Shown piece by piece: positions 42,480 through 55,000 of a DNA stretch of 64,000 nt (position 1 is the first letter of the stretch; every line of letters starts with the position of its first letter). Source of the stretch: Lama guanicoe. Its lineage: Eukaryota. The stretch is from positions 3,919,101 to 3,983,100 of the forward strand of contig MU057202.1 of NCBI GenBank assembly GCA_013239625.1, in the 5' to 3' direction. A program made the translations under genes and the position numbers. The notes under the pieces are model-generated. The model saw only the letters and a program-made list of their open reading frames with translations, was not told the DNA's origin and searched no databases.

Positions 42480-44130
42480 GGGACATCCTTGAGGGGGGAT
42501 AGGGACAAAGGGCGGGCTGAGGCCACCGCTGGGAGCCCACTCCCCGCCCCCCTCGCCCTCTCCACTGTCCCCTCCTCTGTTTCACCCTCTCTGACACCCC
42601 ACCCTCTACAGTCCCCGCGCAGTGGCTGCCGCCAGAGCCACGTGTGCCCGTGCCCCGCAGGCGCACAGGGAGGGAAGCGTGGCCACGCCTGGCCCGGCCA
42701 TCATTTCCCCGGGCGGCCAAGGCGCGGATTCGTGGACAGCGGCCCCTTGGTGGGCCCAGACTGGTCCCCGAGCGCTAGCGCCGGGAGCATGAGCACGAGG
42801 TCGGAGCGCGCAGTGGCAGCAGCGGCCCACGGGGTGGTACCAGCGCCCTGCGCCTCGAAGGTGGAGCTGCGGCTCAGCTGCCGGCACCTGCTGGACCGCG
42901 ACCCGCGACCCGCTCACAGTCCGACCCCAGCGTGGTGCTGCTGCTGCAGTCGCAGAGCCAATGGGTGCAGGTAGGGGCGAGGGCGGGGGTGCAGAGGGAA
43001 GAGGCCTAGGGGTGGACGGTGGTGCCGAGTGGGGACGCAGAGACCCAGGTGGGTGTGGGAAGCTAATGGGGCCCAAGGCAGCGGCGTCGGAGCTGGGGCT
43101 GAGCGCAGGGTCACGGGTGGGGTTACCGGGTCTAGGGGTGCGTGCCCAGGAGCTGTGGCAGTGGAGGTGTCCGGAGTGGGCTGGAGGCGGACCTGCACAG
43201 GGAGCTCCAAGCAGAGAGAGGAGCGCTGGAGTGGAGGGTGCGACCCAGGGTTGGGGGGGGCCTCCGGGGCCAGAGAGGCGCCGCAGGAGGCCTGCCTAAG
43301 GGGCAGAAAGGAGTGGAGGGGCAGGGGTTGGACTGGGGCCGCCGGTCCCTCTCCGCCCGCGGGGCAACCAGGAGCGCGGCTTTTCTGCCGGGTCCTCCTT
43401 CGCAAGGCGGGGGTGCCCGGACCTGGAGCAGGGAGGGCCGGGAGGGGAGCGGCCGACCCGGGCCGGAGCTCGCTGGGAGCCGAGGACTTGATCTCCGAGA
43501 CTGGGACGCCCCGTCTGCAGGGCCCCCCAGCCTGTCGCTTCTCCTGTTCTTGAAGACTGGCGGGGTCCCCAGGGACCTCGGCGCGTGGCCAGGGCAGCCT
43601 GGCGTGTGGCCAGGGTTGGGGACCCGGCTCTGGGCGGGCGGGCCTCTGCGCCGCGGGGCCCCCCTTCAAACCTCTCGTCCTGGGAGTGCCCGGGGCGCCT
43701 GCGCAGGAGCGGGGCTTCCACGGGGCCCGCTGCCCTCGTCATCCCCGCCCGGCCCAGCCCTCCCCGCGGGCGGGTCGCGGCGACGGCTCCGGACGCTCCG
43801 GGCGCTCCGGGCGCTCCGGGCGCTCCGCGCCGGACGAAGCGCTTTCTCGGTCAAAATCTCACGCGAGACGCGTGGCTTCACCTCGAAAGAGCAGGAGATC
43901 GGGGCGCGAGCCGAGGTCAGGGGCTGAAGGGGCTGGTGAGCAGGGGAGCGGGGGCCCGAGCCCGCGGCGGCTCCAGGCTGTCCCCGCCGGCGGGCCCCTC
44001 CCACGCTCTGGCGCCCCCTGGCGGGGTGGCGGCACGCGGGGTGGGGCGGGGGCGGGGGACGCGTCTGGGCCCAAGAGCCCAGGGGCTCGGAGGCCAGGAG
44101 CGCCGCGACCTTCTGATCCGTGACTCTGTA
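42480..44130 (+). promoter_or_regulatory. CpG island over CPNE7 promoter, exon 1 and intron 1
   Basis: High CpG and GC content, multiple GC boxes (CCCCGCCCC near 42542, GGGGCGGGG near 44043). Confidence 0.75.
43785..43827 (+). repeat. 9-bp tandem repeat (GGGCGCTCC) x~4
   Basis: GGCTCC GGACGCTCC GGGCGCTCC GGGCGCTCC GGGCGCTCC G. Confidence 0.9.
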
Positions 44131-45245
44131 CGGTCTCTTGTCATCTCCGGACCACCAGAGACAGATGCCTGCTTCTGGTTTCACTGTCCAGGGTTCCAAT
44201 CCGCTCTGTCCCTGACTTGGGGTGCCCTTGGGCCCCACCCTTCCCCCTTCTGAGCCTGTTTCCCCATCTGCGATGTGGGCGGCCGGGGGAGTGAGGAGTG
44301 AGGGAGGGGCGGCCTGGAGCCTCGCAGCATCTTGTGGGGTGGGGTCTTCCCACAACACAGTCTGGAAGCAAGGACCACCTGAGGGCAGATGGGAGGGGAA
44401 GGGGACCCTGAGGGCCTCACTCGGCGCTGCCGGCAGGTGGACAGAACCGAGGTGGTCCGGAGCAGCCTGGACCTGGTGTTCTCCAAGGCCTTCACGCTCG
44501 GCTACTGCTTTGAGGAGGTGCAGAAGCTGCGCTCTGAGGTCTATGACGCCCACGGGCCCAGCAGCCTGAGCTGTCGGGGTGACAACTTCCTGGGGGGCGT
44601 GGAGTGCACCTTGGGGCAGGTGAGTGCCCATCCCCTTGGGAAGGCAGGGGCAGGATGGGCACTTGGGCAGGTCCTGAGGGCTCGCTCTATGGCAGTGGTG
44701 GCATGGGGACAATGAATAGATGCCGACTGTGTACCAGCATGACCCCCAGCGCTGCCTGTCTCCACAGCTCCTTCTCTTAAAAAACTCTTTTTGGTTATTT
44801 TTAAAAATATGTAATTTTGTGCTGGGTAATATGGATCCAAAGCCAGAAAGTGTGACAGGCACACATGGAAGGCTTCCCTCCTGCTCTGTCTCCAGGGACA
44901 TTACATTCTTCTGCAGAGACGTCTTCTCACTAGAGCCAAGGAACGCGTGCTCTTTTCTCTATATTCATGTATTAGAAAACCCAAATGGCATACACTGTTC
45001 TGCAGCTTGCTTTCTTCACTTCCATGACACAAGGGAGCCCTTCCCGTGTCTCTCCCGTGGCCTGTTGGTCCAGCTCCCACCTGAGAGACACTGTGTCCTC
45101 CACTCCAGTCGTCCGTCAGCTCCTCCATTATCAGTGTAACAGGAGTGCCTGCTCTCGCCACCAGCCAGGCTACTTAGCGCTAGCCTCTGTGCTGAACACT
45201 CCGTGCGTCCCACGTTAAATTCTTGTGAGGGCTACAAGGGCACTG

Positions 45246-52000: not shown

Positions 52001-55000
52001 CTCCCCCAGCTCCCTCCCCCACTCCTGACCCCCCAGCCCAGCCCAGCACTGAAGGTGCCCCCATCTTGTCTCACCCGACGCATCCACATTGTCCCAGGAC
52101 CTGCCCTGCCCGTGTCCAGGTCTCCCGATCTGGGCTCTTCCTCCCAGCCGTGCTCCGTCCAGACTCTGGTCGCCCCCCGTGGGGAGAGGGGCCTGGGCTG
52201 CAGCCTCTTGTCCTCCCAGCCCGTCCGCCCTCAGGCCCGGTGTCCCTCACACACCCGCAGCCCGGGTGCTGATCCGGGTGACGGTTTGGATGCGGCGCTT
52301 CATCTGTGGAACACACTCCTGCTTCATCAGTTGCCCCAGCAGTAATTCCATCGCAGTGTTACTCCTGGCTCAGGATCCAGTCTGGAGTCAGGGTCACATT
52401 CAGCAGTCGTGGTCCCGCATTATTCTAAAGCGAGTCCCAGACACATAATTTCATCGGCAAACATCAGTATAAACCTCTTCGAGAGAGAAAATAGAGCCCT
52501 CAGGCCATCTTCACAGCTAAAAGGTGACCGTTCCTGTCCATGCCCTGATGGCTTTTCCAGTTAGAACGAGGTTGAGATACGGCCTTGCCCCGACAGGGGG
52601 TGTGTCCTTCCAGCTGCGACCCTGCCTTGCCTCACGAGGTCCCTGGGCTGAAGAAGCCCACGTGTGTGTCCAGTAGGGCCCGCGACTGGAGTCTGCTGCC
52701 CTCACCCTCCAGGTGGCCTCCACGCTGTCCTCTGATCCCTGGGAGGGGCCAGACTCCAGGAGGTGCTCAAGGCTGCCTCTGCCTTGTCGGTGCTCAGATA
52801 TCCATCTTAGCGGAGCAGGGTTGATGCTGGCAGACAGTAGGGGAGCGTCCCGGGACCCACCCCCAATGCCTTCACCTGAAATTCCCTGCCACCATCTCTC
52901 TGCCCCGTGGTGAGGCCCCGCCCCATCTCACTGATGCACACGGCCTCCCAGGGCCCCGACTGTGATGCTTTCCAAGCTCAGGTGAAGCTTCCGTTCCAGG
53001 TGGTGATGGAGACACAGGGCTGTGAGCTCTAAATGGGCCCTGGCGCTACTCTCGGGGAGGCAGGCGTTGGGGGTTCCGCTGAGGAGGCACGTGGGGCAGT
53101 TCCAGTCCCGGTCAGGAGACTGTTCACCCCACCCTCGGCTCGGGGGCTCAGAGAGGGCAGGCTGCTGGGCTATCTGTGGGTTCCCTCCCTGGAGAGACGG
53201 TGCAGTGCTGGGTGCCCACTTGGCCGGGCTGGGCCAGCTGGTGGACAGCCCCCCTTCCAGGGCTGGAGGTGCAGAGTGAGCCCTTCTTCTCCTGTGTGTT
53301 TTCTCTCGCTCAGATGTTTAGTAATGACTACTGAGAGGTTTTGTCTTTTTAACCCTGGCAATTGACTTTTATTTGAAGCAAGTCCCAGTCTGTCTTCTTG
53401 GCAGATGCACTGGGCACCTGGCCAGGCTAGACCAGGGTGTGTCTTCGCCAAAGCCCATTCCTTGAATCTCAGTGGCTCTTCAGAGTGTGGGGGCCCCTTC
53501 CCACCCCAGGCCCCACCCCTCCTCCTCTGGCCTCAGACGTGGGTCAGCCTGGTTCCCTGGGCCTTGGGGTCCCGTCTGTAAGATGTGGGCTTTCCGGCAT
53601 CCTCGGGTAAGAGGCAGGGCGGAGGCAGGCAAACGTGTTCCCCGGTGGGGTGCTCCCAGATCAGTGTGGTCACGCAAATACTTAGTCTCCACAAAAAAGC
53701 TCCTGGAGCAGCTTGGAAACCGTGGGTTGAGGGACGTCTGTGGTCTCCCCTGGCCATCTCGGGGAGAAGAGCTGGTCGGTGGACTTGGGGTTTGACTGGG
53801 GAGATGCAGCCGCCCTGAAGGTCTCCGCAGCCCCTCTGCCCTGGGTCCCCAGCAGTACCACGTTCTGCTGATCCTGACGGATGGCGTGGTGACCAACATG
53901 GTGGACACGTGGGAGGCCACGGTGCGTGCCTCCCACCTGCCCATGTCCATCCTCGTCGTGGGGGTGGGCAACGCCGACTTCACTGACACGCAGCTCCTGG
54001 ACGGAGACGGCGGTGTCCTGCGCTCCTCCCGGGGCGAGCCCGCCCTGCAGGACATCGTGCAGTTCGTGCCCTTCCGGAGGTTCCCACTGGGGCCAGGGCG
54101 GAGGGCCAGGCCTCAGGCAGTGCTGGGGAGAAATGGGCGCCTCCCTGCCTGCCCTCAGCAGCCTCAGCCCCTGCAAAACTTCGCGTCATGAGACCCTCAG
54201 GCTGACACCACAGAGGGCAGTGCACCCCCACATGCAGGCTCCCCAGTGGCTTCCAAACATCTGTGACACAGTGAGATATGCAGGGTGTGGGGCCCACTTA
54301 CAGCGTCCACGCGGGGCCTGGGCCCCGGGACCTGCCTTCCCTCCCTGCCTCCACCCGCTGCCCAGAGCAGGGTCACACCCACCCAGAGGGGCCCTGAGGG
54401 GCCTCCCGCAGTGCCAGCTGCGTCTGGCTGCCATAGCCACTGTGGTCCCATGTTGCCCGGCAGTGCCGAGAACAGGCCCATCTGGCCACCAGCTGAGTTC
54501 TTGTTTGTGGTCACGAGCTAGGGCAGGACCACTAGAGGCTGGAGACCGTAGTGTGAACCTGGCTCTAGGAGGGAGCAAGAGGTGTGAGCCATGGGGGTGG
54601 GGGAGACGGAAGACAGAGGATGGGGAGGCCCTGGCTGGAGACACACAGTGCACTCCCAACCCCGGCCCTGCAGGCACCCCCCTCAGCGCTGGCTAACCGT
54701 GTGCTAGCCGAGGTGCCCAGACAGGTGGTGGAGGATTACAGCCACGGGGATCTGCACCCAGGGACCGCAGCGCCTACGCTTGGGAGGCCAGCCTGGGCTC
54801 CACGCCCTGAGGGCGCCCGGGGCGCGGCCAGGACTGTGTTCCCAGGCTCCGTCTCCAGCATCCTTGACCCTGACTTCCTGGAGGCCCCCTGTCCCCCAGG
54901 CCAGGCCCACCTCATCTCCTGTGGCCCTGCTGCCTGGTGGGCCAACCTCCAGGCCCCAGTACTGAAAGCTGGGTAGCCCCCGCTGGCACACCTGCTCTGC

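Follow-up and report, generated by a model that had tools for sequence, protein, structure and literature searches.

The camelid copine-7 gene (CPNE7) at its orthologous locus is, with a probability of about 0.9, an old unitary pseudogene that is camelid-wide, being found in at least two genera. It lies on the + strand at 42789-54810 of the window, which here means the whole analysed stretch of 64,000 nucleotides from Lama guanicoe (assembly GCA_013239625.1, contig MU057202.1, positions 3,919,101 to 3,983,100 of the forward strand). Disabling lesions are present in this assembly, the shifted frame of exon 8 is common to the window and a Camelus protein model, and the amino-acid constraint of the protein has been lost. 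Compared with working CPNE7 orthologues, the window has two altered splice sites and five frameshifts, and 36 of the residues that are invariant from gar to mammals are replaced in it, against 0-9 in the orthologues.

The locus was recognised through a copine vWA-like motif found at about 50.35 kb by motif scan. The open reading frame (ORF) of this exon matched full-length copines in a HMMER search, and a further search led to orthologues that are named copine-7, in many mammals and also in other vertebrates. The exons were then mapped by tblastn and frameshift-aware alignment with the copine-7 proteins of Bos taurus (P0160), Equus asinus (P0165) and Mus pahari (P0186), with the borders read by eye. 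Fifteen CPNE7 coding exons were located on the + strand, all in order once an intron of 63 nucleotides (nt) at 51335-51397 was counted:

Exon 1, 42789-42970, + strand: start codon and start of C2A; lesion of net +5.
Exon 2, 44437-44619, + strand: C2A; own frame open; four vertebrate-invariant residues changed, all of them also in Camelus.
Exon 3, 47158-47232, + strand: no lesion seen.
Exon 4, 47439-47513, + strand: no lesion seen.
Exon 5, 48155-48238, + strand: start of C2B; frame open; SDPF changed to PHPF, with two further invariant residues changed.
Exon 6, 48574-48661, + strand: acceptor AC; deletion of 2 base pairs (bp).
Exon 7, 48822-48920, + strand: end of C2B; frame open; four invariant residues changed.
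Exon 8, 49189-49273, + strand: linker from C2B to the vWA-like domain; 2-bp deletion.
Exon 9, 49616-49675, + strand: no lesion seen.
Exon 10, 50333-50466, + strand: start of the vWA-like copine domain; frame open; DFTASNG changed to DFIASNG.
Exon 11, 50833-50887, + strand: frame open; donor GC.
Exon 12, 51283-51334, + strand: followed by the 63-nt intron 51335-51397.
Exon 13, 51398-51531, + strand: copine domain; frame open; seven invariant residues changed.
Exon 14, 53853-54079, + strand: copine domain; 1-bp deletion; seven invariant residues changed.
Exon 15, 54668-54810, + strand: 1-bp deletion; ancestral-frame stop TGA at 54808-54810.

The length of intron 12 is a multiple of three and it is free of stops. 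Its 63 nt were also considered as an insertion in exon 12, and this was rejected because the GT and AG ends are those of a short intron.

The functional CPNE7 genes of Bos taurus and Equus asinus have the same 15-exon layout, the same SPG7 and RPL13 neighbours and the C2/C2/vWA-like domains that survive in the window as remnants, and 441 of 534 aligned exon residues (about 83%) are identical to the Bos protein. Pfam remnants of C2 were detected in exons 2 and 7 and of Copine in exons 13 and 14 (E-values 1.7e-08 and 1.9e-28), in which the copine-family order (C2, C2, copine domain) is still recognisable, as remnants only. Since the introns and the neighbours SPG7 and RPL13 (with its small nucleolar RNA, snoRNA) were kept, the locus is not a processed or duplicated copy. 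The order SPG7-RPL13-CPNE7 is taken by us to be ancestral, after the map of human 16q24.3.

Frame damage was found in exons 1, 6, 8, 14 and 15, together with two changed splice sites, the acceptor of exon 6 and the donor of exon 11. In exon 1, a 7-bp tandem duplication of CCGCGAC (Tandem Repeats Finder, 42896-42913, period 7, 2.6 copies, 100% match) is combined with a 2-bp deletion near 42918, which gives the net +5. The frame opened by the ATG is shifted in this exon and ends at a TGA in exon 2 (44567-44569), with a product of 104 codons. At 48572-73, the acceptor of exon 6 has AC where AG is expected, and the same exon lost 2 bp, which left a lone T at 48592. Another 2-bp deletion left a lone C at 49231 in exon 8, within the stretch that matches KYKQKRRSYK. 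At 50888-89, the donor of exon 11 is GC where GT is expected. Its context is weak, the last codon of the exon was changed from GAG to GGG, and no in-frame GT was found near this donor. One G was lost in exon 14 (CGGGAG to CGGAG, 54075-79), and exon 15 lost 1 bp at 54755-56; the Bos stop lies about 12 codons further on, and the ancestral-frame stop of the window about 18. The ancestral acceptor of exon 15 reads CC in place of AG, and an AG 6 nt downstream (54672-73) would keep the frame.

No stop codon occurs in the own ancestral frame of any of the 15 exons, and all of the frame damage was done by insertions and deletions (indels), so that assembly error had to be weighed seriously. The ORF that spans the exon 6 lesion had no match in a protein search, and a metagenome scan for the sequence of the exon 8 lesion gave none either. 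The initial annotation of the window had placed 15 copine exons in order at the syntenic position, with lesions in exons 1, 6, 8, 11, 14 and 15. The alignments bore out the exon order, and all of the lesions are present in the assembly, that of exon 11 being a donor change and not a frame lesion. It had also called SPG7 and RPL13 error-free, which holds for RPL13 with its five clean coding exons, and SPG7 was spot-checked on four exons only.

The constraint on the protein was measured on positions that are invariant in an alignment of 25 vertebrate copine-7 proteins, from 18 mammals together with amphibians, reptiles and a gar. The window covers 248 of these positions and is changed at 36 of them, while leave-one-out controls on the same orthologues gave 0-9 changes (0-6 in the mammals). 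At the beginning of C2B, SDPF was replaced by PHPF through S175P and D176H (48170-48175), and DFTASNG of the vWA-like domain by DFIASNG through T315I (50348-50350), which also occurs in Camelus. Both motifs are invariant in the 25 orthologues, and neither was kept in the window. In C2 and vWA domains in general, such motifs have roles in Ca2+ and metal binding. The changes are spread over the protein, with 18 of 100 invariant positions altered in the C2 half and 18 of 148 in the vWA half; no part looks protected, because both halves were changed equally often.

The closest protein by far is a "Copine-7, partial" of Camelus dromedarius (KAB1260585.1 and KAB1260586.1; P0060 and P0269), which comes from a separate assembly. 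This model was predicted ab initio; exons 1, 5, 6, 7 and 11 are absent from it, its exon 14 lacks the start, and intron sequence was used to patch the gaps. It reads KYKQRRQLQELWGG, a shifted frame identical to that of the window. Its exon 8 is AQRDCVNAKYKQRR, then QLQELWGG, which corresponds to the frame of the window before and after the 2-bp deletion. Because the model follows the shifted frame, the exon 8 deletion is present in a separate assembly of another genus. The model also translates intron 12, which is 15 nt shorter there, and one of its pieces maps upstream of exon 11. At the site of the exon 14 deletion, Camelus reads VPFQE, so this deletion appears to be absent there and seems private to the lineage of the window. 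Exon 14 of Camelus seems in turn to be damaged at its start, since the exon enters the model only from DGVVTN onwards.

Both camelids cover 161 of the invariant positions; of the changes at these, 13 are common (DFIASNG among them), 10 are found in Camelus only, 7 in the window only, and one position is changed differently in both. Such a split is what neutral decay begun before the camelid split would leave. The Camelus model and the window agree at 90.5% of 295 true-frame exon residues and at about 92% of 172 residues of translated intron and shifted exon 8, the latter after junction columns without orthology had been removed by hand. The copine-7 proteins of cattle and donkey are 93.3% identical, and the split of cattle and donkey is far deeper than that of the two camelids. 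By these protein comparisons, the CPNE7 exons of camelids appear to be no better conserved than the introns. A 9-bp tandem repeat, GCTCCGGGC, is present with 4.7 copies in CPNE7 intron 1 of the window (43786-43827); its copy number differs between the camelids, as the Camelus model is 9 residues (27 nt) shorter there.

These comparisons bear on three further points of the initial annotation. Its reading as a unitary pseudogene and a real gene loss is supported by the intron-bearing syntenic locus, the exon 8 frame in the separate Camelus assembly and the lost constraint. The lineage, given as probably camelid, fits the Camelus model as closest protein, with about 90-92% identity even in translated intron. 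By the sequence evidence, a New World camelid is the likeliest source: a divergence of about 8% per residue in translated intron excludes the dromedary, and five very close organisms carry nearly all of the 31-mers. It had also proposed a check for lesions common to other camelids, and the shifted frame of exon 8 in Camelus dromedarius is one. With the Camelus model as query against 5.8 billion protein clusters, no camelid protein of 264-840 residues was among the best 120 matches listed, which points indirectly to camelid annotations without an intact copine-7.

The gene would have lost its function in an ancestor that Old and New World camelids share, because the exon 8 deletion and the 13 replacements are common to both. 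At least these events, the 2-bp deletion and 13 replacements at otherwise invariant residues, would belong to the stem. After the split, both lineages would have drifted neutrally and gained private lesions, namely the exon 14 deletion in the window and something at the start of exon 14 in Camelus. If a steady rate is assumed, the 13 common against 7-10 private changes at invariant sites roughly suggest a release from constraint some 1.5 split-ages earlier than the Camelini-Lamini split. With a frame shift in exon 1 and a stop in exon 2, no copine-7 protein could be made, and even with exon skipping the SDPF and DFTASNG motifs of working copine-7 would be gone. The loss would be fixed in the species, and no other copy of the gene would be left. 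More tentatively, and at somewhat less than even odds, the loss of CPNE7 dates from early in the camelid stem and precedes the Old/New World split by tens of millions of years, all living camelids are without the gene, and the locus may persist as a spliced non-coding transcript.

Several points weigh against a pseudogene. The lesions rest on the letters of one assembly, and that of exon 8 is the one shown to be common to Camelus, as exons 1, 5, 6, 7 and 11 are missing from the Camelus model; this comparison was made on protein models and not on DNA. The gene might then be intact in the animal and the indels might be errors of assembly, such as long-read indels left unpolished in GC-rich sequence. 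All frame lesions are indeed small indels, two of which removed 1 bp from a short run of G or C, and the exon 14 deletion was not seen in the Camelus model. But a separate assembly, from another genus, shows the exon 8 frameshift as well, and read errors do not typically take the form of a 7-bp duplication or of three 2-bp deletions that lie outside homopolymers. The adjoining RPL13 is also clean. Nor could indel errors produce 36 replacements of invariant residues or two splice-site substitutions. Of the 31-mers sampled from 48500-54400, 93-96% were present in 16 DNA runs from five closely related organisms and several studies, so that few differences can remain in these 5.9 kb, although this share cannot separate four true lesions from four assembly errors. 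Taken with the evidence above, an intact gene behind a faulty assembly is very improbable.

Possible transcription is a further point against a dead locus. Three RNA runs hold 8-17% of the 31-mers sampled from the same interval, and the CPNE7 locus may still be transcribed and spliced. A useful product might accordingly persist, as a shortened or exon-skipped protein, through an intact allele beside a polymorphic null allele, or as a regulatory RNA. Two RNA-seq runs labelled reproductive system metagenome (X17 and X18) reach 16-17%, which is near the share of exons in the stretch; exons 9-13 keep an open frame, and the CpG-rich 5' end was retained (71% GC at 42-44 kb). However, invariant sites are changed equally often in the two halves of the protein, C2 and vWA, and a product would be without T315 of DFTASNG and D176 of SDPF. 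The exon 8 lesion is old and common to both camelids, which speaks against a segregating null allele, and transcription of pseudogenes is common and no evidence of function. A persisting product is thus unlikely, if a little less so than a faulty assembly, and an old unitary pseudogene is the preferred reading of the locus.

Full-length copine-7 was found in Bos, Muntiacus, Equus, carnivores, bats, primates, rodents, marsupials and non-mammals. Among the best 120 matches of either protein search, Bos and Muntiacus were the only Cetartiodactyla with copine-7, and none came from pig, cetacean or hippo; this lack may be a ranking effect.

The window as a whole is a GC-rich mammalian stretch in which SPG7, RPL13 and the copine gene follow each other on the + strand. 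SPG7 could be recognised by its Walker A motif at about 17.3 kb and its HExxH motif at about 25.9 kb. The five coding exons of RPL13 (34255-36153) follow one another without gaps on the Pfam L13e profile, with no stop or frameshift. An RPL13 intron contains the C/D-box snoRNA MBII-202 at 34647-34730 on the + strand (Rfam RF00324, 80.7 bits, full length). An assembly gap of 608 N lies within the SPG7 region at 21346-21953. A weak tRNA-like match on the - strand of SPG7 (12469-12541; Rfam tRNA, 30.9 bits, gathering score 29) lies inside an inverted duplication (11526-12821), and is probably a tRNA relic derived from a short interspersed element (SINE).

Copine-7 has been studied as a driver of odontoblast differentiation, and the mouse work calls the gene 'indispensable' for the maintenance of odontoblasts. 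Cpne7-null mice are viable, while their dental pulp ages prematurely, with senescent odontoblasts and aberrant dentin (PMC10928576). The peptide Cpne7-DP (KYKQKRRSYK) corresponds to residues 344-353 in the linker of the human protein and regenerates tubular dentin in animal models (PMC7603008). For the CPNE7-derived peptide selcopintide, which we assume to be Cpne7-DP, one paper reports a first-in-human study (PMC12361636). It is in the linker segment that yields the dentin drug candidate Cpne7-DP that the exon 8 deletion of camelids lies, in the middle of the codons for the decapeptide: those of the window give KYKQRR, then the frameshift. In the library that was searched, no literature was found that links CPNE7 or copine-7 to pseudogenisation, gene loss or camelids, and gene-loss catalogues or the NCBI pseudogene annotation may list the loss.

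Unitary pseudogenes of tooth genes are known in mammals without teeth or enamel. Like camelid CPNE7, they are single-copy dental genes that decay in place with clade-wide lesions. Camelids, unlike those mammals, have normal dentin-bearing teeth, so that the loss does not follow the loss of a tissue, and CPNE7 is also expressed outside teeth. As lineage-specific losses of single genes are common in mammals, this one is a useful entry for the catalogue and no surprise. If the reading is true, camelids would be a natural knockout of copine-7 that has yet kept long-lived, heavily worn teeth, and they would be a place to seek compensation, for example by paralogous copines. Working teeth would then be possible without the gene in at least one lineage of large, long-lived herbivores.

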